From Botryllus schlosseri (Eukaryota): a DNA stretch of 64,000 bases. Numbering within the stretch: position 1 is the first letter of the stretch; each line of letters starts with the position of its first letter. Location: positions 28,954,001-29,018,000 of the forward strand of contig CM119377.1 of NCBI GenBank assembly GCA_051294905.1. The letters run 5' to 3'. Below, piece after piece: positions 1 to 61,369 of this stretch. A program made the translations under genes and the position numbers. The notes under the pieces are model-generated. The model saw only the letters and a list, made by a program, of their open reading frames with translations, was not told the origin of the DNA and ran no database searches.

Positions 1-424
1 ACCAAAAAAAGAATTCAAACAGGAGAGATGATCTCGTTGAAGGAAGGGGCCGACGAATGGATGACATGCATCCAGGATCAACTTGATGGAAGCGAAGTCG
101 GACCCAAGTCCGATAGAGAAAACGAGACGAGAGTTGGAAATGAACCTGACGACGACGGCCTGGCTGGAGATGAATCCGACGATGAGGAATCTGAAGGAGA
201 CGATTCGGCCGATGATGAGTCTGATGCGGACGAACCGGATGATGATGATGGAGAGGACGATGAAACTGAAGCAGGAGCGAACCTGCGAAGAGATGAAATT
301 ATATAGTGCCGATGATATTTTATTGTCATTTCACAACTGCATATATAATCATGTATATTTGAAATATCTTGTATTGCAATAAGTCATATTAGAAATAAAC
401 GCCCCCGTCGGGCTCATACAAAAA
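1..424 (+). mobile_element. E0: 3' end of an L1/Tx1-like LINE (acidic ORF2 C-terminus, 3' UTR, AATAAA, short A tail)
   Basis: Frame is open from base 1 to 306 and ends in a D/E-rich tail. An AT-rich UTR with AATAAA (~395) and AAAAA at 420-424 follows. Layout resembles the E5 3' end (26400-26880). Confidence 0.55.
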
Positions 425-434
425 GAATAAGCAG

Positions 435-469
435 ATTGGGGTATTTGGTTGTATTAAGGTAAGCATCGG
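435..469 (+). ncRNA. Candidate spliced-leader (SL) RNA gene, 5' part: SL exon + splice donor
   Basis: 435-458 ATTGGGGTATTTGGTTGTATTAAG is 23/24 identical to the 482-505 copy and to the recalled stolidobranch SL. It is followed directly by the canonical donor GTAAGC and not by the element 5' UTR. Confidence 0.75.
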
Positions 470-481
470 AGTATTTGGAGT

Positions 482-505
482 ATTGGAGTATTTGGTTGTA
501 TTAAG
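482..505 (+). other. SL exon copy at the 5' end of E1
   Basis: ATTGGAGTATTTGGTTGTATTAAG, preceded by a stuttered partial copy (470-481). Confidence 0.85.
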
Positions 506-667
506 GTAGCAACCGGCGTAAGTATACTAACGGCTATTTCAGATTCAAGGAGCGTACCGGAGCCGATGAGGCATTAGCTACTTACCGTAAACCTCAGTTT
601 TAACCTAGCGATTTAAGTAGGCTACTTCTTCCTTCCTTCTTTTCGTCAACGTTCGGACTACATTTTC

Positions 668-855
668 GAGTCTCCTTCAGACTCAATCCTTCTACCTCTC
701 CAGGACTCGACTCCTCTTCGTGGGTCGAGTCTTGACTCTCTCTCTTGAGTCAGGACAGGACTCGATGAGTCTTTTCTTTGGAGACTTGACTCTCTCTGGA
801 GTCAAGCCTCCACTTTCTCCTTTCTCTCGCGCCTCTCCCTTGAGACGACGAGAGA
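668..855 (+). repeat. GACTC/GAGTC hairpin array in LINE 5' UTR
   Basis: Five or six inverted GACTC..GAGTC pairs. Homologous arrays lie at about 12340-12560(-), 22395-22600(-), 57370-57540 and 61085-61295. Confidence 0.75.
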
Positions 856-862
856 CTTTAAC

Positions 863-2980
863 CATAGTGTCCTATATGGTGTCGACACAAGCAAATCGCA
901 CGGTTCAATGAAATTGTATCACGTCACAGTTTCCATTTGGCTACAGGCAATTTGACGGTGATTTTTGACCGACTTTCCGAGCATTAAATTTGATGAATCG
1001 GGTATCAATCGAAAGCTGACGCTGTACTGCTTGCGAAAATATAAATTTTATTCCACTCATGGCCCTGGAACCCCCACAATCTGCCCCAAATTATTCATTG
1101 TCGAGTAGATTGGCAGTGTGACGCAACAATGATGTCTGGCGAAACGAGAGACTAGCTCAAGAGCAAGGATGCGGCCGAGCGGCGAGAGTGGGATCAGCTG
1201 ACGTCGCCGCAATAGCAATGTGCAACCGCGCCACAGAGAAACGCTGCGCTGTTGATACTTTTTCTATGCGTTTCGCTAAAAGCGAGCACACACCAGCCTT
1301 TCCTTGACTTGTAAGGGTAGAACTGGGTCCACGGAATGTATTAGGGCCCTACCAATTTTCGCGCAATATCCTTGAGCTGATAGAGATATGTAGGCTACGT
1401 CTAAGTAGTCTACATTGGATATGTCAGATTATTATGATATCGATTGCCTTAGCCCGCTTGTTGCGTAGGGCTCCAGAGATGCGTGGCGCTGTTGATACTT
1501 TTTCTATGCGCTTCGCTAAAAGCGAGCACACACCAGCCTTTCCTTGACTTGTAATGGTAGAACTGGGTCCACGGAATGTATTTGGTCCCTACCAATTTTC
1601 GCGCAATCCTTCAGCTGTTAGAGATATTTCTAGTAAGAAAAAGATACTTTCAAGTAATAAGATTCACTCAAGACAGCAAATTTAGATAATGTAAATATAT
1701 CATATTGTAGTAATACAACTACAGTGTTGAGTTTTCACTCTAGTCCCAATAAGCACCACGTCGGTGACCTTGCCAAATTCCGAGAAGGCGAGAAAGTGCA
1801 AACTCTGTTGGGCCGAATGGACAATGGACATTCAGTTATTCACAGATGCGAAAAAAATACTGCAAATCCGTTTTACGTAAGTTACATTAGGAATATATAT
1901 ACAGGCTACAGAATGAATATATTTCAAATATCTGTGATACCACTGTATTACTTTTGACGCAAAAGGTCCCCGGCATTCAAAAAAACTATTTGGTGATTGA
2001 AAAATGCTAAACTAAATTCCAACGTCAATGTTTATAGTGATATCAGATATATTCCAATGAAAAACAAAGGTATGAATTTGGTGGTAACATTTTGGAATCA
2101 TTTGGCAGGTATGGCCCGCAAGCTTTCTAGTAACGGATTGAATCCGGACAGCGATACCAGTTTAATTCGACACTCCTGCTGTTAAACTTTATTCAACAAT
2201 CAACATTTTACCTGCTGCATTCGCGGACCAAGTCCTACCCATACGGATCAAATAAAAGCTTGTAATGTATGCTCAATTGCTCATGCTCAATGCTCCGTGC
2301 TCACACTTAACCATAAAAGCGACTATAGAAAGTATCGACACCCGCCATCAACAGCGCGACGTGTCTCTGGAGCCCTACGCAACAAGCGGGCTAAGGCAAT
2401 AGATATCATAATAATCTGACATATCCAATGTAGACTACTTAGACGTAGCCTACATATCTTTATCAGCTGAAGGATATTGCGCGAAAATTGGTAGGGCCCT
2501 AATACATTCTGTGGACCCAGTTCTACCCTTACAAGTCAAGGAAAGGCTGGTGTGTGCTCGCTTGTACCGAAACGCATAGAAAAAGTATCAACAGCGCAGC
2601 GTTTCTCTGTGGCGCGTTTGCACATCGCTATTGCCGCGACGTCAGCTGATCCCACTCTCGCCGCTCGGCCGCATCCTTGCTCTTGAGCTAGTCTCTCGTT
2701 TCGCCAGACAGCATTGTTGCGTCACACTGCCAATCTACTCGACAATGAATAATTGGGGGCTGATTGTGGGGGTTCCAGGGCTGCGAGCGGCATAAAATTT
2801 ATATTTTCGTAATCAGTGCAGAGTCAGCTTTCGATTGATACCCGATTCATCAAATTTAATGCTCGGCAAGCCGGTCAAAAATCACCGTCAAATTGCCTGT
2901 AGCCAAATGGAAACTGTGACGTGATACAATTTCATTGAACTGTGCGATTTGCTTGTGTCGACACCATATAGGACACTATG
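863..2980. mobile_element. Non-autonomous foldback DNA transposon (P-like MITE), ~630-bp inverted arms
   Basis: Termini CATAGTGTCCTATATGG / CCATATAGGACACTATG; 7-bp TSD CTTTAAC (856-862, 2981-2987). The left arm has a ~240-bp internal duplication. No transposase ORF. Confidence 0.85.
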
Positions 2981-3332
2981 CTTTAACCTTACTTTACCTT
3001 CGATCGTTTGACGTCTGCTGTCTCGATCGAACGATCTCTCTAGCCGTCTAACAACGCCCTTGCAAACGGCTTTGTGCCTACTAAAAAGCGCTTTCAAACA
3101 ACGCTACTGTCCTGCATTTTAGAGTGGGATTAGCAACCATAGTACATCGCTATAGTCTGTTATCCTAGGCTCTTGTGTAACAAGCAGCGAAAACAACAGT
3201 AGTGACAGCTCCCAAGAATCAGGTTAGCTAGACCAACCTTCGGTAAACTGTAGCAAGCCTTCACACACAGATACCTGAAGGTTCAAGATACAGATAGTAC
3301 AAACAGAAGCCGACAACGAAAGAGCAACAAGG

Positions 3333-4500
3333 ATGGCATACGCAAACGCAGTACAAAACATTCAAGCACAACGCGTAACATATGGACTTAGACCGAGATC
3401 TATAGACATAATAGCGCCATCCGAAACGACCGCCTTTCAAATAATCGAGGTGCTAAGATCACACCCACAGCTCTCTAAACACCCGGAAGACATTCTCTCC
3501 ATGTTTCAAATAGGGAGAAACACCTTTAACTTAACTTTCACTGACGCACAGCCAGCTGAGCAGATGAAACAAAACTTCCTTCAACAAGGCGAGAATGGGA
3601 TTGCCACTGATAATGACACCATTTACTTTGAATATCCCAGACTGCCGACAGTTAAGATCAACGTTAGAGCAATTCCTACGGAAACAGAAGAGGAAGAATT
3701 CAGAAGGAAGTTTATATCTTACAACTGTGGCACAATCAAAGAGACAACCAAAATCTATCATCGGGGTACAAATATACAAAACGGCTATCGACAAATATCG
3801 GTCGAAAACTATCAGCTGGGCAAGATCCCAACCTTTGTATATCTTAGGAAGGCACCTTGCAAGGTGTATCTACCAGATACAGATGAGACGCACCAAAAAT
3901 GCTACAAATGCCTCCAACCAGGGCACGGATCCAGAGAGTGTCCCAATCAGACGGCGTGACTACTGTGCAGTAAGCAAGTAAAAACCAATACAAAATCAGG
4001 TACCGGTGCGAGAAGGAAAATACTTCAACACGAGCCGATGTCTGGCTCGCAATACACAAAAACGGCTGCCGCGCAGCAATCACAATTGGCGTCTCAGGGA
4101 CCCGGACAAGACGAAAATACACAACTAGACATAGAAATCGAAAATAAAACACACGGTGAGAAACCGAATATCGATGAAGGAAGTAGTGAGGTAAACGATA
4201 CTGAAATTGAAGACGTCTTCAGGCAAATAGACTCTATGTGCGAAGAAGAAAGCGTGCAGAACAAAACAATAATCAAAGCTACAGACGCAATTGAGAGCAG
4301 CAACGAAGATGAAGGAGAACTGACTATAGTAATCAGTGAAGAGGAAATAGCAGGCCTGAAATCCCCGAGAAATCGAAAGGAGTGATAGCGCACATGTCAT
4401 GTAAAGTCTTTGAGGAACGCTCCTTTACCCAGGAAGAAGAATCGCCGAACAAACGCAATAATGACCAGAGAAGTCCAACTGGGAGACCGAAACCTAGTAA
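3333..4500 (+). pseudogene. E1 ORF1 (RNA-binding, CCHC zinc knuckle), disrupted after aa 208
   Basis: MAYANA..TYGLRPRS N-terminus and CYKCLQPGHGSREC knuckle. A TGA replaces the Cys of the second knuckle. An acidic low-complexity tail follows in other frames. Confidence 0.85.
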
Positions 4501-4533
4501 ACATGAAAAGTAGCGCGCCCATTCCAAAATCCG

Positions 4534-7500
4534 ATGGATAACAAAATTTTATCCTTGAACGCCAATGGGATGGAAACCCATTGGTTCAAAATTAAAAACC
4601 TACTCAAAAGGGACAAGAATTGGAATATAATATGCATTCAAGAGACCCATAGAGTAGACATAACTAAAATAAGGAAATGGACAAAACAGAACGAATTCTT
4701 ATATTATCCAAACCACATAAATGTCGGGCAAACTTGGATAGATACAGAAGAGGGAAAATAACACTACTATAGAGGGACCAGTAAAATTATCAGAAAGGAA
4801 ATGGGAACTAAATTCGGAATCACCCATCGGATTATAAAGGAAAATAGGGCACAAGCGCTACAATTAACTGATCACGAAACGGAAGAGGACACGACAGTAT
4901 ACAATGTATACGGTCCCAGTGACGTCGGAAGACATCAAACGGATTTTTATAAGGAACTTATAACGGAAATCGAAAAAGACCCAGACAACGCAATAGTCTG
5001 CGGTGACTTTAATATAGTCACCGAGAAAATAGCTTCTAAAAACACCGAGAATTTTAAATTCACACTAGCGGCCAAAGTCTGGAAATCCTTCACGGAAATA
5101 TATAAAATACGAGACGTATGGCGTTGGCGAAACCCAACTAAAAAACTATACACAATAATGAAAGCAAGGCAATCAAGACGGATTGACAGGATATATGTGT
5201 CGCAGAAAAATCTAGCGAGAGTCAGAAGCACGACCTACATACTTAACACTATAAGCAGATCATGTCTTCATGCAAAAAATCCATATTGCCAAACCCTTCA
5301 ACATCCAATGGGGTAACCGGGTCTGGAAGAATGATGCCAGACTCTTCCAGAACGAAGACCTGCACGAAATAATAAAAAGGACCCACCAGACATGCACGGA
5401 AAACAAGCCGTTTTTCAACGATGTGTATGACTGGTGGGACTACCTGAAAAAACAAATGAAAACGCAACTAAAGAACTACAGCTGGTTAAAAAAAGGCCGA
5501 AAACGACAACAAGATAAAAGCTTTGTATGAAAAAAATACACCAAATCCAAAACGACCCAAACCCGCAAGATAGCCCCCTTGAGGCCGTAAAAGAACTAAA
5601 GAAAATAGAGGAGGAAATACGCCACCAATGTAACCTCCATAAGCTTAGGGACCTCGAGGAGGACGAAAAACCTACAAGGTTCGAAAAACTGAAGCAGAGA
5701 AAGGAAAGTAAGATATTGAGCGAGGTAATAAATGAAAGAGGTACCACGATCACCTCTAAAGAGGGAGTATTGGGAGAGGTAGAAGACTTCTACAAAAACC
5801 TCTGGGCCAAGGATGTGAATGCAAATAATGATATACAAATGCAATACCTGGATGAAATCAGACACATCAAAATCACTCCTGAAGAAAGAGAGGGGCTAAA
5901 AACCCAGATAGATCACGATGAAATAAAAGCCGTAATCCAGAAAATGGAATATGGTAAAACACCAGGACCAGACGGCTTATCGAGGGAATTTTACGCCAAT
6001 TACTATTATATCCTAAAGAACGATATACAGGAGGTAATTAACAATGCTTACCTATTCGGTGGAACATGCAAAACTTGGTCAGAAGGCATAACCACAATGG
6101 TCTATAAAAAGGGAAGCCCCCAGGATTTAAAAACTGGAGACCTATCACCCTCTTAAACACTGATTATAAAATCCTCACCGCAATATTGGCAGCAAGACTT
6201 AAACCCATCCTCCCAAACATCATCAATGGAACACAGAAATGTGGGATTCAGGGAAGATGCATAACAGATATCTTGAGAAATACACGAGCCGCGACCCAAT
6301 ACGCGAAAGAACGAGGAAAAGGTCCGACCAAGAGAAAGCCTTTGACAAAGCCTTTGACAAGGTAAACCATAATTATATCTATAAAATCTTGGATATATAC
6401 AGTTTTCCCAACCACTTCACTAAACTGATTTAAAATATCCATCAGGAAGCTAAAAGCAAAATCCTAGTGAATGGAGCCTTAACCCAAGAAATACCTCTTG
6501 AAAGAGGAATTAGGCAGCGGTGTCCGCTTAGCATGACCCTCAATGCCATTTGCAGCGACCCCCTCGCCAGAAGAATAGAAAAAGTCCACACGATCGAAGC
6601 ATTTAGGTTGGGAAAATACAATATGAAGATCCAGCAGTACGCGGACGATCTCACGGGCTACCTGACCAAAGAGGGGATATTGGGAAAATATTCCGAGAAT
6701 TCGATAAATATGAAAGAGCGACGGGGCAGAGGCTAAATGCGGGGAAAACCCAAATTCTTCACATACAGCCGAAAGGAAACTTCCCAACCCAAAAAATGCA
6801 GACCTAAAAAAGCCTAGCATAGAAATACTAAGACAAATATTCGGAATAAATCAGGTGATAGACACCTGGAAAAAGAGAACAATGAAAATCAAGAAAATAG
6901 TCAACGCCTACAGGCACAGAATGGATTGAAAAAAACATCCTAAACTCGTTAGCCGCAAGGCAAATAATATATAATGCGCGAGTAATAGCGATGATAAAGG
7001 AAGTACAGAAAGAAATACAGAAGATGTATTTCTACTTTCTCTGGCAACCAGAAAAAATGGAGGCTATAAAAAGGAAGACCCTAATATCAGAAAAGAGGAG
7101 GGGAGGAATGGAAATGCCGGATGTTTAGGCAAGAGTGAAAAGCCTGTGAATTAGAAAATATCCTAATTCTTAGAGAAATGAAAAAACCAACAGAACTATG
7201 GCACAAATATGCCATTTATGAGACGGGAACCAGAATAAAAGAAATTAACAAGAATCTTTATAGGAATACAGGACCCCACAAATTCCCGACCCCGCCCACC
7301 TGGGTCGAGAATCTGGAGATGAGCAGACGTATAGATCTCGATGAGGAGGAGTGGAGAGAGGCCACCCATAAGTCCTTGATAAGGCAATAAAAAATTTGAA
7401 TGAAATTAGGCCAGACATCAGAACGGAAAAAGGGGAGGAAATTAATTGGAATAAAATAAACCAAACGAAGTATGACACCCAAAAAACTATTACAAATGAA

Positions 7501-7990
7501 GAACTCATCATAAACTATAGAACAGCGCAGAACGGGTATATATTTGGGAACAAAAAAAGAAATCGAAACACAACGCACACAAATTTAGGCAAACCATTGA
7601 TATTAAATTAAACTGTGAATTCTGTAATGAAAGAAACGATGACGTAGAGCATATTCTCACGTTATGTACACATCTTAAAAAATTACGGAACCAAATAGGG
7701 AACATTGGGGAAAAAACTGAATAAAAATTAAATCCTATATAATATCGGAAATTGCAAGCTAGATTGGACCATACTGTCGATCTACAAGAAAGCCGCTATA
7801 AATTTCAAAATAGCACTGGATATCTATAACAGAATGATTACAGATGAAAATATAACAAAAAACATATTGAGAAAAATGAAAAGAAGATTAAATCGAGTAA
7901 CACCAGACAAACAGACGGACAAACTAATCGCAAACATCGCGAAGTTACGATCTGGTCCGCGAAGTTACGATCTGGTCCACTCTAACCTAA
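4534..7990 (+). pseudogene. E1 ORF2: APE endonuclease + reverse transcriptase, multiply frameshifted
   Basis: EN motifs SLNANG, CIQETH, GDFN, IDRIY. RT motifs KTPGPDG, DQEKAFD, GIRQRCPLS, QYADD. Confidence 0.9.
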
Positions 7991-8185
7991 TGAAAAAAAA
8001 TAATAAAACACAATAACCCCTAAAGCTGGGCTCCAAATGAAAGCTTGGCCAACCCAACAAAAAAAGTGACAAAAATCCCTTCCGGGGACGAGGGGGAGGC
8101 CCGACAAAAACGGCCCAACCACTCGCGGCAGGTGGGCAGCGTTTGGAGCACAAATGGAAATATTGCCTCCTTTTGCCGTGATGAC

Positions 8186-8271
8186 ATTGGAGTAGTTGGT
8201 TGTACTAAGGTATGGAAAAACCTGACAGAACCAAAAATTCCATTGTAGTTGTTGGCTGTACTAAAGTACGG
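8186..8271 (+). other. Two SL-like exon+donor copies in the E1 3' UTR (56-bp period)
   Basis: 8186-8209 ATTGGAGTAGTTGGTTGTACTAAG|GTATGG (22/24 to SL); a more degenerate copy at 8242-8265 is followed by GTACGG. Confidence 0.7.
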
Positions 8272-8329
8272 GAAAACCTGACAGAATCAAAGCTAGAGGA
8301 GCTAACAAGCTTAATAGAGTAAAATAAGA

Positions 8330-8470
8330 TGAAACCGTTAAACTAAGTTAAGAAACCGTTTTGAAATTCGAAACCGTTAAACTAAGTTAAGAAACTGCTC
8401 GAAACCGTTAAACTAAGTTAAGAAACTGTTTGGAAATTCTTAAGAAACTGTTTGGAAATTCCTAAGTTAA
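8330..8470 (+). repeat. Short degenerate tandem repeat in the E1 3' UTR
   Basis: Repeated GAAACCGTT(AAACTAAGTTAA) and GAAACTGTTTGGAAATTC units. Confidence 0.6.
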
Positions 8471-8617
8471 AAATAAAAAAAAAACATAAAAATAAACAAA
8501 ATGTGTAGTAAAGACCCCGAGCGGGAGGTAGCCCTATTCTATGAGAGGGCTGCCAAACGCCAGAGGGCTGCCAAACGCCGGCGGATGCCGGGAGCCGTAA
8601 AAAAAATAAGCATCGGC

Positions 8618-8959
8618 TTACTGGACGGTGGCCGGTGCGAAACCCTAGTGGTCCAACCATAATACCTCCAATCACTCTCACACCCAGGAAGAGTATGGCC
8701 TTTGGCCTTCATATTCCGACCCTGGATCTGAGTCTGCTTGACGGGCCAGTATCCCATGCATAGCCATGGTGGCGAGGACAAGCTTGTGGCCCCAGACTCA
8801 AGCCCCTCAAAGACTGGCTATGCAGACTCGCTGCACCTTCATGCTGGGACGGAAAAAATGAAGATGAAATGCGAGTCAACCGCGATGGGAAATCTGTGTC
8901 CTAAGACACAGAGGACCCAATACGGGGGGAGGTTTACTGCGGTTCCTCCGGACAAAAAA
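8618..8959 (+). mobile_element. E2: 5'-truncated LINE 3' fragment (or short non-autonomous element) at the same SL site
   Basis: Ends in ACGGGGGGAGGTTTACTGCGGTTCCTCC (shared with ~49482-49509) plus an A tail. TSD AAGCATCGGC (8608-8617, 8960-8969). Confidence 0.75.
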
Positions 8960-9012
8960 AAGCATCGGCAGGGTGCTGCCAGTTTAGACAGGTGTCTTCC
9001 TAGCTGTTTTTG
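8960..9012 (+). ncRNA. Candidate 3' (intron) part of the interrupted SL RNA gene
   Basis: Continues the target after the TSD: AAGCATCGGCAGGGTGCTGCCAGTTTAGACAGGTGTCTTCCTAGCTGTTTTT. It has hairpin potential and ends in a T-run; no canonical Sm site is present. Confidence 0.45.
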
Positions 9013-9128
9013 CAGATTTAACATTAGCTGTGGTTTTGACGCTGTGGCAAACGTTGTAATTTAAAAAAACTAGACAGGACGTGCTTTTTATAGAAGTAAA
9101 TTTTATTTTGCGGTGCGACGTACTAGAC

Positions 9129-11465: not shown

Positions 11466-12721
11466 TTTATTTGTATCGACATTTTATAGCAATTCTGCCC
11501 GGTGTGTAATTCTCAATTGATACCTGTCTATATCCGTTAAGGATATTTGTACCTCGGTGATATATCAAGGTGATCTCCTTGATCGTACCACATTGGTAGC
11601 TGGTAAATTTCTTCCGGATTTCGGCTTCCTCCACTTCTGTCGGGACCGCTCTAATATTTATTTTAAACGTGGGAAGTCTGGGTTGTTCGATGTGTATTGT
11701 ACCTTTTTCCGTGACAATCCCGTTGTGTGTTGTGTCCAGAAAGATCCTTTTCAGTCTTTCTATCGGTGCGTCGGCAGGATACGTTAGATTGTAAGTGTTC
11801 CTGCCTAATTGGAACAAAGAAAGGATGTTGTCTTTGTGTTCAGCGAGTGTTCAGTGCGTTCTTATTGCATCTATGACCTCAATCGCTGTTATCTCTGTTG
11901 GTGTGAGCAAGCCCAAGGATCTAGGTCTGAGGCCATAAGTGACCCTTCGATTGTTCATACCTTGCAGCGCGTGTGAGTATGCCATGTCTGTTGTAAGTGT
12001 ATGTTAGTTCCTGTTAGAGCCAGGCAACTGCTGGCGTCTGGTTTCTGTGTTCGTTCCCAAATACTTGTATCTGCGGCGATAGTTCCTGCTGTGCTGTGTA
12101 GTTGTTGGTTTGCTGCTCTGTGCTAGGCAGGCCGCTATCGATTTGTTGTTTCTCGTAGCCTATATACTGCTGCGCTGTTGTAAACTGCGTTGTTTAGCGG
12201 TGCTTTAGAAGCATTGTGAAGGTTTTTAAAAGGCGTTTCTGCGCGCTTTGTTAGAAAGATACTGCAGTTTCTGGTTTCGCTGGCCGATCGTACGAGCACC
12301 GTCCAGACGGTTTCGTAGCGCGTTAGTAATTTAGGTAGGGAAGCCAGACAAGTCTCTCGACGTCTCGAGCGAGACGCGCGAGAGAGGAGAAAGTGGAGAC
12401 TTGACTCTCTAAAGAAAAGACTCAACGAGTCCTGACTCGAGAGAGAGAGTCAAGACTAGAAGAGGTAGAGAAAAGACTCACCAAGACTCGACCCGCGAAG
12501 AGGAGTCAAGTCCTGCGGAGGTAGAGGGTTTGAGTCAAAAGGTGACTCGAAGTGGAAGTTCGGCGACGAAAAGAAGGAAATGGAAGTAAGTATGTTAGCC
12601 TATGTAAGTCAAAAAAGATAACTAGTAATTACGGTTAGGGTAAGACTAGACTACTGTCTCAGCGGCACCGGATCTCCTTGTTGCACCTGAAAAAGCCGTT
12701 AGTATACTCACGCGTTGCTAC
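11466..12721 (-). mobile_element. E4: 5' portion of an E1-family LINE (5' UTR + partial ORF1), 3' part missing
   Basis: Starts GTAGCAACGCGTGAGTAT, homologous to E1 directly after the SL. Has the GACTC hairpin array. ORF1 MAYSHA..TYGLRPRS starts near 11985 and matches E1 ORF1. Confidence 0.85.
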
Positions 12722-12945: not shown

Positions 12946-13172
12946 CATACCTTACTGCAACACAACACTCCAATGGCCAGGATGGGTGGGTTTCTCATTT
13001 TGCCTCTTTCGGACAAAGGCTGCCCACAAGAGAGTACGAAGCTACATACCTTACTGCAACACAACACTCCAATGGCCAGGATGGGTGGGTTTCTCATTTT
13101 GCCTCTTTCGGACAAAGGCTGCCCACAAGAGAGTACGAAGCTACATACCTTACCACAACCAAATACTCCAAT
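12946..13172 (-). repeat. 99-bp tandem repeat in the E3 3' UTR, each unit carrying an SL-like exon + GT donor
   Basis: Exon-like copies 13149-13172 (ATTGGAGTATTTGGTTGTGGTAAG, 22/24), 13050-13073 and 12951-12974 (ATTGGAGTGTTGTGTTGCAGTAAG). Each is followed by GTATGT. Confidence 0.8.
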
Positions 13173-46900: not shown

Positions 46901-49360
46901 GTTTGCAGCCCTTGCCCCACCACCCCATATTGCCACGAGCCGCCACTGAAGAAGAGGCAGAGGGGGAAGAAAGTAATGAAGAAAATGAAATAGAACAAGA
47001 AAAAGAGGACCTCTTTGAAACCGTCCTAAACGAGGCGGACACACAAGAAAGCAGCGTCTTAGACCAAACAATAAGACCAGGTCAACAGGAAGAAATAAAC
47101 AGCGAAAATAGTGCAAAATCAGACGAAGAAAGCCTGAAAATCGTCACCAGCGATGACGACACACAACAGAGCACTAACAAAACGGGCAATCTCAAAACAA
47201 CCCGGACAAGCCGGGAAAAATCAAACGGCGCACTTGAGAAGGAAATTCGAAAGCCGTAACTTTACGGCAACCGAATTTTTCAGTGCACCATCACCGAATA
47301 AAAGAAATATAGAACAGCGTAGTCCGCGGGAAGAAAATAAAGACACGAAAGCCAGGAAAAAACTTGGCTACGAGAAATAGAATAACATGAACAGAAACTA
47401 ATACTCCCCCACCCAAAAAGAAAATGGATATGGACATAATATCAGTCAACGTCAACGGCATGAATGTCCATTGGCAAAAAATAAAAAAATCTTCTTAGAA
47501 CCGACAAAAAATGGAAAATAGCCTGTATACAGGAAAAACATAAAATGAATTTTGACAAAATAAAAAAGTGGGCCGAAACAAACGGCATCACGTATTACTC
47601 AAACCATATTGAGGAAAACACAAACTGGGTAGACGCTGAAGAAAACAAAAAACTGTACTTCAAGGGAACCGGAATATTCATAAAAAACGGAATGCATGAA
47701 GATTACAAGATAGTGAACACCATAGTAAAAGAACACAGAATTCAGTACATTAAATTAACAGATAAAAAAACAGATCAGGCCACAAAGATCTGGAATATAT
47801 ACGCACCAGCAGACGTCGGGAGAATACAAACAGAAACATATAAAATACTAACGGAGAACCTCAGCATCGAACCACACACAACAATCGTATGCGGTGACTT
47901 TAATATCGTCACCGAAGCAATAGACGTAAAAGACGCAACAAACTTTAAGCTAACACCAGCTGCAAAAATATGGCGAAACTTCATACGGATATACAAATAC
48001 CGCGACGTGTGGCGATGGCACAATACATGGAAAAAAACTGTATACAGTCATAAAGACCAGGCAGTCAAGAAGAGTCGACCGAATATATGTCTCCAACGAC
48101 CTGCTACACAGCAGCAGAACCCAGTATAAGCTGAACACTATAGCAGATCACACATTCTATCAGAGAATAACAATAAAACAAACAGAACAGGCCAGGTGGG
48201 GGAAAAACTATTGGAAAAATGACACGAGGCTGTACGAAGACAAAGAACTCGAAACGTTAATACAGAAAATACATCACAAATGTAACAAAAGAAAATCCCA
48301 CTACGAATTTATATACGAGTGGTGGACCTCTTTAAAAACCAAGCCAAGAGGCAAATAATCAAATACGCAATAACAAAGAGAAAAACTGAAGTCAGCAAAA
48401 TAACCGAACTAAGAAACTTCATAGCGAGAAAACAAGATGAGCACGACGGCGACAATACATACGCCGAAGTTAAAAAGCTGAAGGAGATAGAGGAGAAAGA
48501 AATCCAAAGAAATCCAATACCAATGAGGAGAAAGAAATCCAATACCAATGCAAGCTCCACAAGCTAAAAGACCTGGAGCAAGGCGAACAGCCAACAAAAT
48601 ACTTCTTTCGGAAACTAAAACAACGAAAACTTTCGGAAACTAAAACAACGAAAAACAAACAAATCACTAGCCGAGATAGAGAACCGAGGAGAGAAGAAAC
48701 TAACATCCAAAGAAGAGATATTAGGAGAAGTAGAGCAATTCTACGAAAATCTGTGGAAGAAATCAACACATGAGAACCGTGCCCTACAAGATAAGTACAT
48801 AGAGACTATAAAGCACCTAAGGATATCGGACGAAGATGAGAGGCAACTAGAAACTGAAATAACCCAATTAGAAATCAAACACACACTACAAGGAATGGAA
48901 AACGACAAAACAACGGGCCAAGATGGCCTCTCCAAAGAATTTTATACAAGGTATTGGAACATAATCAAAAAAGACATACAGGAACTCCACAACAACGCAT
49001 ACCTCTTCGGAGGATTATGTGAAACGTGGAAAGAAGGTGCTACCACGATACTCTATAAAAAGGGAGACCCAAACCTTTTAAAAAACTGGCGCCCAATAAC
49101 TCTCCTTAACACGGACTATAAACTCCTAACCGGAATCTTATCGAATAGACTCAAACAGGTACTACATAAATTGATCCTACCGACGCAGAAATGCGCAGTA
49201 GCAAATAGAAAAATTAGCGACGTGCTGAAAAACATACAGTCAGTGAAAGAGAGGAGGAAAGAAGTGCTGATAATAAACTGAGACCAGCAAAAGGCGTTCG
49301 ACCAGCAAAAGGCGTTCGATTTAGTGAACCAGACTTATCTATGAGAAACTTTGAAGGTAA
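43945..49360 (+). mobile_element. E8: E1-family LINE, 5' UTR truncated, ORF1 44148-47400, ORF2 47424-49345, 3' truncated
   Basis: MAYANV..TYGLRPRS N-terminus, two CCHC knuckles, EN motifs and RT up to DQQKAFD. Confidence 0.85.
44983..46948. mobile_element. Non-autonomous hAT-like element in E8 ORF1
   Basis: TIRs CAGTGGCGGCTCGT / ACGAGCCGCCACTG; TSD AAGAAGAG. Degenerate internal repeats at ~45380-46060. Confidence 0.85.
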
Positions 49361-49529: not shown

Positions 49530-51245
49530 GAAACAGTGCACTTCTCTATTCCAATTTCTACTTCAGGATAAGATTTCGATAGACAGTACGGCCCTTGGAC
49601 AACGGGGGAACCGGCTGTCGAGGCCCTAAGTCTTCATAGCTGCAGCTACCCGGCTTGCCGGTACCGTGTCGAAGACTTGGGAAATGAAGCCCCATCTTCC
49701 ACTTGCTGTTGCGTCTCTGCAACCGCGCCATGAACAGATGTTATATATAAAACAAACAACAAACAAGAAAAGAACAAATACGAAGAACATTTACTTTATA
49801 ACTTAAAAAACCTTACTTAAAACACGTAGAACAAGTAATTTAATTTAAATCAAAAACCTTGGTCTAGAACAGTGGTTCCCAAACGGTAGGAAATTCCCCA
49901 CTGGTGGGGAATTCAATGGTTTCTGGTGGGGAATAGACGAATTTGTTCAAAATTATATACAGGACAGTCTACATATTCACGGAGACACATGCGCAATTAC
50001 CGATACCAGTTAGCTGCTCTGGAATGTATGTATCGAAAATTATATTGCGTGTTGTTCACAAAACCTCATTTTTAACTCTCGGTGGCCAATGATGGCGTCA
50101 CAAACGCATCCAGCACGACTAGTTTGATCTGAAATAACGCTTTCGCGAAATTTTGAGCGTTATACTGGTATCGGTTCACAATACGTTTTACGTTGCAGTT
50201 ATAGGCGATTGTCTTGCGTAATGGTGTTGTTGTGGGTCTTGTGTAGTAAAACCAGCAAATAGCTGCTCTGTGATGACAAAAGTGCTGGGTAGTGGGGAAC
50301 AGGACCGTAACTGCCGCTACAATACGTAGAATTTGTATAAATGGAAACTTCGGCGTCGGTCCTTACTGCGCCACGACACACCAAGGCATATGAAGTTATC
50401 GGCCGTGCAAGATGCAACTCTGAGAAGTGTGCCAGAACGATCAGCAGCTAGAAGACCTTGGCCGAGACGAAATGCCCTCGTGGTGACCCAAAACTTTGAT
50501 ATACAATATTAGCGAAATGGCTGGCGCCGAATGTTCCTGTCCTGGCGATCTGAACCCCACAGGACAAATGCCATCCCGCAGGGAAAAATTATTTGCCAGT
50601 AAAGCAATACCAATTTGAAAACGTGTGTGCCTTTTACTTTTGCGCTTTCCACATTTTTTGACATATCAGATATATAGGAAGTCACGAAATAGCATAATTT
50701 AACGAAGTCAATATACCAACGGGTCCGCCCGAAGATATTCAATTCTTATTTAGGAGTCCTACTTTTCCAACACACCTCACTCAGCTCTACCGGTAAATCT
50801 GATTACGTGAGCAGAGAGGGGATAAAAAATTGACAGCAAAATATATGCAATTCCCGATCATATTGACCGATTCAAACACAGATTATATAAATTTTTTCGC
50901 GCCTGGCGCGTTTAGTCGAAATAAGGCTACGCACTAAACAGTAGACCAAAGGCAGTTATAAGTTGCAGGGAAAACGCGTACAGGCTTAGCGTGTCTGAGG
51001 GGGTGCTGGGGGCCCAAGACCGACGTTTTTTATGTTGGGCTGACAAAGTGCTGTTACGGTCCTGGTGGGGAATGGAGGCTCGTAATAAATCTGAAGTGGG
51101 GAATGAAGACAAAAAGGTTGGGAACCACTGGTCTAGAAAAACTAAAAAAAGAAGAACTTCAAAACCCCCAGACCGGAGCAGGCACCTATACCAGACGTAG
51201 AGAGGGCCTGCGATGGTCTGGGTTTCCGGAGAGCCGCATAAAAAA
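49530..51245 (+). mobile_element. E10: 3' UTR remnant of an E1-family LINE (interrupted by a MITE)
   Basis: Terminal stem-loop and GAGCCG+A tail (51178-51245) resemble the E1 and E3 3' ends. Confidence 0.5.
49870..51130. mobile_element. hAT (Charlie-like) MITE
   Basis: TIRs CAGTGGTTCCCAA / TTGGGAACCACTG; TSD GTCTAGAA. Confidence 0.88.
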
Positions 51246-56600: not shown

Positions 56601-57086
56601 CAAGATATGAAAAACTTATCGGGGAATTTAAAAACAACAAGCAATATAAAGAAGGAAACGACGCGGACCAGTGGATAGAAATAATAAATAATGATAAAAA
56701 TACATAGGCCTACTTGAACGAAATTGTATCAAGTTATAATTGACCGGATTTGTCACTGCTATGGACCAGATTTTTCACTGCTATGGATTGTTTATAGTCA
56801 GAGAAACTAGCCATTGCGAGGAGACCGCATTTACGTCCACCGCGTCAACAAAATACAATGGAAATGTTTCATTGCAGGAATCAGGTAACTATAAATCGAT
56901 ATAGCCAATCATTTACCCTTATACTACGTCATTTCATTTTAAGCGACTAAAATACGGAGAATGGGCCAGCAGTCAAGTTCGCGGGTATTATGATAGAGTA
57001 GATTTGTGTAGTTCTCTACAGTCTGAATAATTGTTTAATTTTTCTGTTCCATATATATACGGCAGGACGGAGTATGGACCGGAGCC

Positions 57087-60000
57087 GGAGTATTTGGTTC
57101 TGTTAAGGCCGCGCCAGCGTGAGTATTAACTGCTTTTTCAGATTCGAAGACTCGTCGACTGAGCCGCTTCGGCTATTGTAGCTTAGATTTACCGTAAAGA
57201 TTAGATTTAACGTATTGTACCTGTGCCGTAACCAGGTAAGAACTAGTGCCGTAACCAGGTTAGAACCTCCAAGGCTAAATTGTGACTGCTGCTCTGCCGT
57301 ATCTTCGCCGGCAGACAGCAGTCACTTGGGCTACCTCTACTTTACCTCCTTCTACTCTCTTTGCCGTCGACGATCTTCGAGTCTCCTTTAGACTCAACTC
57401 TCTCCAAGTCTTGACTTTCTCTCTCGAGTCAAGTGTTGTCGAGCTCTCCCTCTCCGAGACTTCGCTCTCTCTCTCTCGAGTCTAGTCTTGGTGAGTCTAC
57501 CTTCGCTCTCGCGCCTCTCCCTTGAGACGTCGAGAGACTGCTTTCTTGAACTCGAGTGAGGTTTCTTGAACTCGAGTGAACTCGCCTGACGTCAGCCGTC
57601 GGACGAGTATCGTTCGATTCACAGTGCCGTCTGAGCGCGCAGACTACGCCTATCGAGACACGGAGACAGTAGTATCGATTTCTCGAGCGTCTGGAAACGC
57701 CTTGCTTTGCGCTCTATAGCAAAGCAAAAATAGTATGCAAACGCTCTAACAGGACGCGATAACCAGCGAATAACCTACGGCAACAGGCCACGATCACTGG
57801 ATATAACGACACCACCAAACAGCGAAACAACAGAAGTGATAGATGCCGTTATCACACACCCTAAACTCAAACAATACAGGGAACACATCGCCTCCATCTT
57901 TCGAATAGGCAGAACGACGTACAATATATCCTTCCACGAACATGCACAGGTGGAAATGATACGCGAAGAGTTCCTGGATCAAACAATCACGGGAATAAAC
58001 ATGACAAATGGAACGATGTACGTACAAAAGCCGAGGCCACCTGCGGCACAAATAAACATCAGAGCCGTACCAACGGAGGTGGAAGAACAAGAAGACACAA
58101 AATCGCACAGTACAAATGCGGCACGGTGCAAGAAGTCAAACTAATCTATCACAATGGTACTACCCTCCATAACGGGTACAGACAAGTAACAATAGATGAT
58201 TACGTACCGGGAAGACTTCCGCCCTTCATATACTTGGGACAAGCACCCTGTAAGGTCTACCCACCGAACAATGAGGTAAATGAAACGTGCTTTAAATGCT
58301 TGCAGAGAGGACACACGGCAAGCAGAGAGGACACACGGCAAGCCAATGCCCTAACATGACAGTATACTTCCTATACAAACAAACGGTCACAAATCAGAGG
58401 AAAATACTAAAGGTCGACGAACAAATCACACCAACGGACGTGGAAGAACTACATGAACCTGAAAATAACAACGAAGAACAAAGCCCAACCTCTGCATCCT
58501 TTGATACAGAGGTTGGGCTTTGTTCTTCGTTGTTATTGAGGAGACAGAGATTGAGGAAACAGGAGAGGAAGAAAAAGATGATAATGAAGGAGAAGAAGAA
58601 GAGGACGAAATAGTAGAAGACTACTTTAACCTAGAGCAAAATTCACAAACACCAAGCGAACTTGATACAACGATCATACCAGGTTCACAACACGAAAGCG
58701 AAACTGAAGAACTGCAAATCATCACAAGCGAGGATGAAACCTAAACACAGCAAGATGAAACTCAAGGCAGTAAAAAGCCAAAACACACACTAAATAAAGA
58801 TAGAAATAACCAAACAAAGGTTCGAGGTCAGTCGATTCACGGAAAGCGAATTCTTTAGTGCAGCACAACGCTCACCAAATAAAGGAAATAGTGACGCACG
58901 TAGCCCAACTTTGCCAACGACAAGTAAAAACAGACGAATGCTGGCGAAGCCGAACCCGGGCGAAGAGAAACAGAAAGCCAAAATAGTACCTTGCCCCTTC
59001 CCGCAATCAAAAATGGCTCTTGATATTATCTCCTTGAACATAAATGGAATTAATGCTCACTTGTACAAGCTTGAATGCTTATTGAAAAACAATAAAAGAT
59101 GTAATATCCTCCACAAATAGGCCCAACAGAACAACTGGATATATATCCCGGACCATATTGACGACGGACAATACTGGATAGATAGAATAGGAAACAAAAA
59201 ACATTACTACCAAGGAACCCCGATATTCGTGTAAAAAGAATTAGAGAAAAACCATACCATAGAGAACACCGACATACCATAGAGAACACCACCATGTTAG
59301 AAGATAGGAAACTAACAAAGAGGATGACCAGTCAAAGCACATATACAACGTATATGGACCGGCTGATGTGGGGAGAAACCAAACAGATGTGTTCAAAATA
59401 CTAACGCAGCGCATCGGAAACCATCCAGACAGCGCCATAATCTGCGGCGATTTCAATATAGTAACGAACCGTCTTGACTCGAAAAACAACCGAACGTTCC
59501 AACTTACACCAGCAGCGAAAATCTGGAAACTCTTCACAGAAATCTGGAAACTCTTCACAGAAACCCATAAAATAAGAGACATATGGAGATGGAGAAATCC
59601 AAACAAAAAACTATACTCAGTAATAAAAACTTTCAACTCGAGAAGAGTTGATAGAAGATCCTTATAAGAGAAATATCTTAGCCATGCGCAAACATGCAAA
59701 AAGTTAAAGAACACCTGCAACTCTTCGCACGCTAAAAAAGAAAGGCGGAAATAAACCAAGTAAGAAAACTACGAGAGGCGGAAATAAACAAAGAAAGAAA
59801 ACTACGTGATGAAATAACACGAATACAAAGAAACAGCAACAACGTCTTCGACGCAACGGACAAAATCAAAGAGCTTAAGCAGATGGAGGAAGAGAACATC
59901 ATCCACCAATGCCGGCTCAGTAAGGTAAAGGATATTGAAGAAGGCGAATAGCCGACCAAATACACTAACCAAGAACTGAAACAAAGAAAGGAAAGTAAAA

Positions 60001-60830: not shown

Positions 60831-60881
60831 ATCGAAGTTGGATCATGTCGAATGAGATCCTTTCCTAATAGGAACAGAGCC

Positions 60882-61369
60882 GGAGTATTTGGTTGTATCA
60901 AGGTCGCACCAGCGTAAGTATAACAAACGGCTTGTTACAGATGCACGGAGCGAACCGGAGCCGCTGGGGCAATAGCTAAACGTACCTAGATACCTACAGT
61001 AATAGCTAGTATTTTTCTTGTGGTAACCTAGACTAGAAAACTTCCTTCCATTTCTTCCTTTTCGTCGCCGGGTATTCACACTCACCTTCGAGTCTCCTTC
61101 AGACTCGTCCCTTCTCCCTCCTGAGACCTGACTCGTCTTCGTGAGTCAGGTCTTAAAGGAGTTTTTTCTACCTCTCCGAGACTTGACTCGTCTTCGTGAG
61201 TCGATTCTCGTTTAAGTATTTTTCTTTAGAGACTTGACTCTCTCTCGAGTCAAGTCTCTACTTTTCTCCTCTCTCGCTTGAGACGCAGAGAGACTGCCTG
61301 CTTATCTTTAGCCTAATTACCTATACGTCTTCGCCGCTGTCTAGACGGCGATCATACGATAGTCTAGCG
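60882..61369 (+). mobile_element. E12: 5' UTR of an E1-family LINE with SL head
   Basis: GGAGTATTTGGTTGTATCAAG (20/21 to SL), GTAAGT donor motif and GACTC array; interrupted by a hAT element. Confidence 0.85.

Follow-up and report, generated by a model that had tools for sequence, protein, structure and literature searches.

A leaky preference of an L1/Tx1-like LINE and an SL-headed SINE for the splice-donor region of spliced leader RNA-like genes in Botryllus schlosseri

Why do two retrotransposed elements lie one directly behind the other at the same position, just inside the splice donor of a spliced leader (SL) exon? The question is posed by a stretch of 64,000 nucleotides of the Botryllus schlosseri genome (NCBI GenBank assembly GCA_051294905.1, contig CM119377.1, positions 28,954,001 to 29,018,000, forward strand), referred to below as the window, in which a long interspersed nuclear element (LINE), E1, and a unit resembling a short interspersed nuclear element (SINE), E2, follow an SL exon. 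The explanation that we consider probable overall is that E1 belongs to a LINE family with an apurinic/apyrimidinic-type endonuclease (APE) that prefers the SL-donor site and inserts there by target-primed reverse transcription (TPRT), that heads acquired by read-through recreate the target, and that the SINE uses the same machinery.

The junctions at the locus can be read to the nucleotide, all on the plus strand. The SL exon of the target copy, ATTGGGGTATTTGGTTGTATTAAG (435–458, 24 nt), and the start of its intron, GTAAGCATCGG (459–469), are followed by E1 (470–8606), a decayed LINE of the L1 group that spans a 5′ untranslated region (UTR), two open reading frames (ORF1 and ORF2), a 3′ UTR and an A8 tail (8599–8606). 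The upstream copy of the E1 target-site duplication (TSD) lies within GTAAGCATCGG (460–469). The downstream copy, TAAGCATCGG (8607–8616), together with the C at 8617 doubles as the upstream TSD of E2 (8618–8961), a SINE-like, non-autonomous element of 0.34 kb that also ends in A8 (8954–8961) and is followed by GCATCGGC (8962–8969). The 9-mer AAGCATCGG occurs exactly three times in the 64 kb (shuffle mean 0.48), after the SL exon, after the A8 of E1 and after the A8 of E2, and nowhere else; an SL-like 21-mer is found five times against 0.00 expected. Junctions and TSDs therefore confirm the first-pass annotation of this DNA in placing two elements at one site just inside the SL donor. That annotation had also taken them for two independent insertions. 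The site is indeed used recurrently by many LINE and SINE copies, as described below, but two separate events for E1 and E2 cannot be proved, since AAGCATCGG also flanks the E1+E2 composite as a unit; no ordinary TSD is present around 435–8961 as a single unit. The window thus holds one variant SL-RNA-like gene copy struck by E2 and E1, either as two events or as one chimeric complementary DNA (cDNA).

Is the position preferred elsewhere in the genome? Our censuses rest on pattern read-outs and on 70 loci, a sample of the copies, in which L031–L048 were chosen by similarity to E1 ORF2 only, without regard to target. Among distinct, poly(A)-ended LINE 3′ junctions, 8 of 14 adjoin T[A/G]AGCATC or the homologous sequence of a LINE head (L032, L034, L035, L036a, L039, L041a, L041b and L046). 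Two of the eight are in SL-RNA-like genes of a long type (L032, L035) and one in a short type consisting of a hairpin plus T-run (L034); two are in LINE heads (L036, L041), one is at TAAGCATCGG (L041), and an unrelated repeat supplies the remaining two, at TGAGCATCGTTT pseudo-sites (L039, L046). Three further on-site junctions come from the window: that of E1, one near 12720 on the minus strand, where a LINE tail (E3) meets the head of another LINE (E4) at its post-SL boundary, and one at 51245, where a LINE tail lies at a pseudo-site. Genome-wide, A6 followed by TAAGCATCG is found at 25 sites, compared with 3 for the reversed control.

SINE copies show the same junction. In 16 of 58 SINE heads another element's poly(A) precedes the head at exactly the target base, and about 15 of 50 tails of one SINE subfamily adjoin TAAGCATCG, AGCATCG or TGAGCATCG. 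Within the unrelated repeat, which carries TGAGCATCGTTTC, the same base has been struck by at least seven LINE or SINE copies with TSDs of 7–13 bp; a fixed first nick combined with TSDs of this range is the pattern of a first nick that reads sequence and a second that is loose. Chance would place any one 9-mer about once in every 130 kb; by that measure these counts amount to an enrichment by several orders of magnitude, and in the copies sampled the expectation that insertion sites of the family are enriched at the motif is largely supported. The targeting is nevertheless a strong but leaky preference and not strict specificity. Of the site-specific targeting of SL genes proposed at first pass, what stands is the recurrent exact junction in many independent LINE and SINE insertions; strictness does not, in view of the junctions elsewhere that are weighed below. 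As a separate observation, a LINE poly(A) at about 7914–7970 of L042 adjoins a tRNA-like sequence (..GGTTCGAATCCCACC), which may mark an insertion in a tRNA gene or a tRNA-derived SINE.

The identity of the leader is firm. The sequence GATTGGAGTATTTGGTTGTATTAAG is the tabulated SL of Botryllus, Halocynthia, Herdmania, Boltenia, Polyandrocarpa and Styela (PMC3795323), and in thousands of reads from four RNA runs the SMART cap-switch oligo directly precedes the base corresponding to position 435. The 24-mer is therefore the real SL of this stolidobranch ascidian group, as had been supposed, and forms the 5′ end of RNAs. The 11 bases of GTAAGCATCGG likewise follow the SL in thousands of RNA reads; 3798 reads of run X7 continue through them after the SL and then diverge. 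Capped RNAs that start with the SL and retain the intron start thus exist. Because position 440 is A, the canonical base, in ~100% of cap-switch SL reads and G in the window, the SL copy at 435–458 is a variant; its expression was not seen in the sampled RNA, and its function as a gene is putative. The continuation of reads with cap-switch oligo, SL and GTAAGCATCGG had no match in the assembly when up to 3 mismatches were allowed (one 30-mer each from X7 and X3), and these reads possibly reflect an SL RNA from an unassembled gene or a library artefact. The continuation of the X7 read ends in a stretch complementary to the first 10 SL bases. An Rfam scan of the window returned U6 only and no SL RNA family.

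The sequence interrupted at the locus has relatives. Following E2 are ~90 nt (8962–9053) comprising GCATCGGC, a hairpin and an end in ..GTGGTTTTGACGCTGTGGCAAACG, for which there are 12 paralogs and hence 13 copies in all. Downstream lies a conserved block, TAGACAGGACGTGCTTTTTATAG (9071–9094), which is present in paralogs L035 and L049–L056, sits ~15–20 nt 3′ of the RNA-like part across paralogs and appears to resemble a 3′ box of the small nuclear RNA (snRNA) type. At least 7 of the 13 SL-RNA-like copies are interrupted at the same point by poly(A)-ended elements (the window, L032, L035, L050, L052/53 and L054), and the short-type gene in L034 is interrupted there as well. The remainders of the interrupted genes carry no poly(A) and lead into a T-run or the conserved downstream block; because they continue into conserved flanking DNA in this way, the targets are genomic genes and not retrocopies.

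A 30-mer search for intact genes with SL and GTAAGCATCGG led to SINE heads, one polyadenylated retrocopy (L003), one copy with a variant exon (L017) and L006. The retrocopy (G000:C2:12216900-12219929, ~1490–1570) is of a short SL RNA form, namely SL, GTAAGCATCGGC, a 4-bp hairpin, T9 and A6 with TSD ATCTTGAATTGAG, and the target remainder in L034 has this same form with hairpin and T-run. Two stretches of G000:C14, at 22.17–22.30 Mb and 24.13–24.33 Mb, hold concentrations of LINE copies, SINE arrays and SL-RNA-like remainders and are possibly a degraded SL gene cluster. The exact 23-mer SL has 110 copies genome-wide, and exact SL exons followed by GT are also found inside other dispersed repeat families (L058–L064, L065–L067 and L068) that have their own conserved flanks on both sides, for example ..gttgctatggtaac..ataatatt before the SL and GTACCAAGGTCAAG after it.

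E2 had been annotated as a second LINE-type element. It belongs instead to a SINE-like family whose copies normally carry a head of SL exon plus GTAAGCATCGGC, followed by a non-coding body of 0.34–0.45 kb, poly(A) and variable TSDs. At least 149 BLAST candidates are present in the genome at 74–92% identity. The 30-mer of SL plus GTAAGCATCGG occurs at least 43 times, on all chromosomes, and at nearly all fetched loci an E2-like body follows directly and then a poly(A) tail; the TSDs are ordinary, unrelated between loci and situated upstream of the SL. The possibility that SL plus GTAAGCATCGG is found only inside elements, which would have spoken against gene targeting, is therefore half realized: most such sites are element heads, yet SL-RNA-like genes are interrupted too. 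Since the combination mostly marks element heads, insertion sites were counted independently of the SL. In run X5, 82 capped-SL reads continue into the SINE body, and capped 5′ ends at SL position 1 suggest transcription by RNA polymerase II (Pol II). The SINE shares its target preference with the LINE in the junction censuses, and we infer that it depends on the E1-type LINE for its movement.

What kind of LINE is E1? Its description as full-length holds for the span but not for the coding sequence, which, compared with an open relative, has at least 26 in-frame stops and at least 3 frameshifts, and the copy is further split by a nested element; E1 is a dead copy. The ORF1 remnant (3333–4510, +) contains a CCHC zinc knuckle, and the ORF2 remnant (4513–7947, +) an APE endonuclease, a reverse transcriptase (RT) and a C-terminal zinc-binding region; the pieces match zf-CCHC, Exo_endo_phos (PF03372, 2e-7) and RVT_1 (5e-4). 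The 5′ UTR is interrupted by a hAT-like element with terminal inverted repeats (TIR; 864–2980, strand unassigned) flanked by an 8-bp TSD, CTTTAACC (856–863 and 2981–2988). This insert of ~2.1 kb is non-autonomous, has long inverted arms and has related copies in L046; E1 relatives align to 483–857/863 and resume at 2991, leaving a gap over it.

Open relatives have a CCHC ORF1 and an ORF2 of 1156–1165 aa that matches Exo_endo_phos (PF03372) at 2e-13, RVT_1 at 4e-35 and zf-RVT at 9e-4, the last below the Pfam cut-off; residues C1044, C1047, H1056 and C1061 are conserved in at least 90% of 34 sequences, and the ORF2 domain search gave no RNase H match. A structure model of ORF2 (predicted local distance difference test score of 85.6) was compared with Swiss-Prot by Foldseek. 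Xenopus Tx1 (2e-58) ranked above mammalian L1 ORF2 (5e-56 to 9e-54) by a negligible margin, in a purely structural ranking and with the same 19% identity to both; jockey, R1 and R2 followed at 1e-20 to 1e-30 (jockey and R1 at ~1e-27 to 1e-30), and SLACS at 1e-14 over the RT only. The traits of the L1/Tx1 group are present, that is, an N-terminal APE followed by RT, a C-terminal Cys/His region, a poly(A) tail and TSDs, and the endonuclease is APE-type and N-terminal, with no restriction-like endonuclease (RLE) C-terminal to the RT. By domain content and modeled fold, the E1 family can be assigned to the APE-type non-LTR (long terminal repeat) retrotransposons of the L1/Tx1 group. The first-pass assignment to an L1/Tx1-like APE lineage is upheld to that extent, with Tx1 and L1 ORF2 tied at the level of the clade; the target specificity makes a place in the Tx1 clade plausible rather than established.

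The nearest genomic relative of E1 is 77% identical and most are at 65–70%; the family is old, diverged and of low copy number. The window contains at least five further related LINE copies or fragments, at 12720 (−), 13040–13170 (−), 47750–49140, 57084–59630 and 60879–61300; one junction among them joins a tail into a head, and one 3′ UTR holds SL-like cassettes in tandem.

The 5′ ends of the LINEs bear on how the elements might reproduce their own target. The E1 head (470–542, +) has a layout shared by 11 heads of diverged relatives: partial SL repeats (470–481), a full SL copy (482–505), GTAGCAACCGGC (506–517), which is a decayed SL intron start, and an intron-like stretch, GTAAGTAT..TACTAAC..TTTCAG, that ends at 542. 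Relatives of E1 at non-SL flanks also start with the SL exon and a decayed intron start, and LINE heads continue with an intron-like stretch that has a strong donor, a TACTAAC box and a CAG acceptor. Pairwise identity among 11 LINE heads is 0.83 over the SL part, compared with 0.66 over the following ~135 nt. At position 2036 of L036 is a copy that lacks exactly the intron-like stretch and that, for this reason, derives from spliced RNA.

These features can be joined in a single scheme. The endonuclease would nick the bottom strand opposite GT[A/G]AGCATCG, between the G and the T, which places the nick at base 2 of the SL RNA intron. Reverse transcription would start from this nick, so that the poly(A) of the new copy comes to adjoin TAAGCATCG, and a second nick of variable position would give TSDs of 7–13 bp. 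A copy inside an SL gene could then be transcribed from the SL start site into an RNA beginning with the SL exon and the first ~12 intron bases. The head would travel with this RNA, become visible when the copy lands off target and present a new target there. Tandem SINE arrays are accounted for, because a head kept off target recreates the target site. Read-through at the SL start site is the most likely origin of the heads, and it is favored over template switching because the head reproduces exactly what precedes the insertion site. It is probably the endonuclease, rather than RNA or DNA homology, that reads the site.

Several observations weigh against this scheme. Six of the 14 LINE junctions and about two-thirds of the SINE junctions lie at other, varied sequences, mostly T-initial, which means either loose specificity or the movement of some copies by a second machinery. 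The 3′ tails of SINE and LINE are not obviously alike, and their partnership is argued from the shared target alone. RNA reads over window positions 1–6000 have a depth of 0 across the E1 body (3000–6000), and an open relative (L037:1701-7700) has a depth of ~0 in the sampled RNA. The assembly yielded no SL gene that is at once intact, canonical and unoccupied, which leaves functional genes as a putative natural target; they may lie in unassembled arrays. Lastly, the promoters of SL genes of the snRNA type lie upstream; headed copies off target are therefore expected to be silent, which makes the persistence of master copies harder to account for.

Is more than one event needed at the window locus? 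E1 and E2 may have arrived as one chimeric cDNA in a single event, and tandem arrays in which poly(A) adjoins TAAGCATCG and a SINE may have formed likewise; we regard this as possible, if on the unlikely side. By this route RT would have copied an E2 RNA with its 5′ end at (G)TAAGCATCGGC, such as might be left over after an SL head is spliced off, and switched to the poly(A) end of an E1 RNA. Besides the AAGCATCGG copies that flank the composite, the position of the junction is suggestive, one base past the splice donor, as a stop at the branched G would give. The RT of the LINE family also clearly switches templates, because pieces of U6, tRNA and U1 are found fused to its heads. One template-switch chimera of the L1/U6 kind lies at 22740–22944 of the window (−): a U6 snRNA (Rfam, 97 bits) joined head-to-tail to a tRNA-like piece, which in turn leads into a truncated SL and then a LINE 5′ UTR. 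At ~1950–2060 of L036 a U6 is followed by poly(A), a U1-like start, the SL and the spliced LINE. A single chimeric event does not account, however, for insertions in genomic SL-RNA-like genes whose remainder lacks poly(A) (L032, L034, L035, L052 and L054), nor for repeated strikes at TGAGCATCG in the unrelated repeat. It alters the number of events at this locus and not the nature of the family.

It is also conceivable that the SL look-alikes of the LINEs, both the 5′ head and a cassette in the 3′ UTR, are functional parts and not passive transductions, although we think this rather unlikely. Every LINE copy has a cassette of SL exon plus GGTA ~250 nt before its tail, and E1 has two such look-alikes (8186–8271, +). 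Conservation of the first cassette reaches at least 90% across the 3′ UTRs of 14 diverged copies, in contrast to freely varying flanks, and the homology of the cassette to the target stops at most 2 bases from the nick. Pairing of element RNA with the complementary strand of the SL gene might direct the nick, or set its position, and likewise the 5′ joining, which would amount to RNA-assisted homing by an APE-type LINE; that the cassette helps homing is speculation. Alternatively, the heads could act as portable SL start sites or donors, in which case part of the SL-RNA-like transcription would be element-borne.

A quite improbable origin for the heads is ordinary trans-splicing of the SL to LINE and SINE RNAs followed by retrotransposition, with the clustering of junctions resulting from homology-driven joining or gene conversion between heads. 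Such an origin would explain why a near-perfect SL starts all of the diverged LINE heads and why, at position 2036 of L036, the SL is joined directly to the post-acceptor exon, and the conserved SL-like 3′-UTR cassette could supply the homology. But the heads keep 8–13 SL intron bases (GTAAGCATCGGC in SINEs, decayed in LINEs), which trans-splicing removes; the TGAGCATCG pseudo-sites have no adjacent SL exon and are nonetheless struck at the same base; and a 3′ junction held to one nucleotide is not what homology would produce. It is highly improbable that the SL gene of the window is the mere head of a dispersed SL-headed SINE and the shared site accidental: most genomic sites with SL plus GTAAGCATCGG are SINE heads with unrelated flanks, and the window exon is a variant unseen in RNA, but the poly(A) of E2 is followed by GCATCGGC and ~90 nt with 12 paralogs and a conserved downstream block, at least 6 of these 12 paralogs are interrupted at the same point and the junction recurs dozens of times.

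How does a LINE with a preference for the SL-donor site compare with known systems? The closest parallels are the target-specific LINEs of the Tx1 clade, in which Keno inserts in U2 snRNA genes, Mutsu in 5S rRNA genes, Dewa in tRNA arrays and Tx1L in the transposon Tx1D (PMC4494074, PMC4640811). Like these, the E1 family combines APE and RT, a single position in a multicopy small-RNA gene, and poly(A) with TSDs, and Tx1 ORF2 is its single best structural match in Swiss-Prot. The targets listed for the clade are U2, U5, 5S, tRNA, satellites, microsatellites and transposons, with SL genes appearing only under RLE-type elements; the E1-family target, the SL splice-donor region, was thus not found listed for APE-type lineages, and the preference is leaky. 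Non-LTR elements that home to SL RNA genes are CRE1/2, SLACS and CZAR of trypanosomatids and NeSL-1 of nematodes (PMC4640811). The E1 family resembles them in inserting into SL-type RNA genes (here SL-RNA-like copies) but differs in its APE, as those elements use an RLE and come from clades that branched off early. Their insertions lie inside the SL exon, while the site of the E1 family is the second intron base.

The SINE has its nearest counterpart in SINEU and Tx1-Mar of crocodilians, for which transcription from flanking or target promoters has been proposed (Kojima 2015; PMC4494074). SINEU and the E2 family alike are short poly(A) retroposons with a 5′ head from a Pol II small-RNA gene, and each shares a target preference with a LINE rather than an obvious common tail. 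The head of the E2 family differs in its make-up, the SL exon with 12 bases of intron, which exactly matches what lies upstream of the insertion site, and in recreating the target. For R2 and R1 of ribosomal DNA, target-derived sequence at the RNA ends is thought to aid precise joining (PMC4494074). Co-transcription with the target gene, known for R2 and proposed here, would be a common feature; target, clade and (for R2) endonuclease type are different, and off-target copies of the E1 family are common and keep the transduced head. The U6, tRNA and U1 pieces 5′ of LINE heads at 22740–22944 and in L036 are like the U6-chimeric retrocopies of L1 but are a side feature that offers no explanation of a fixed SL head. 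No earlier description of an SL-targeting APE element or SL-headed SINE in tunicates was found in the literature, Repbase Reports being outside the search.

An unrelated APE-type lineage that, in a chordate, reaches the same safe harbor as RLE elements would be a clean case of convergence. The SL exon with its intron start is a new kind of SINE head, and a natural example of a transduced head that recreates an element's own target. For the ascidian itself, element heads account for >100 exact SL-exon copies, and disruption affects more than half of the members of one SL-RNA-like gene family; annotation of ascidian SL genes must allow for these elements. With its nucleotide-precise preference and many natural on- and off-target sites, the family is good material for studying how an APE endonuclease gains specificity.

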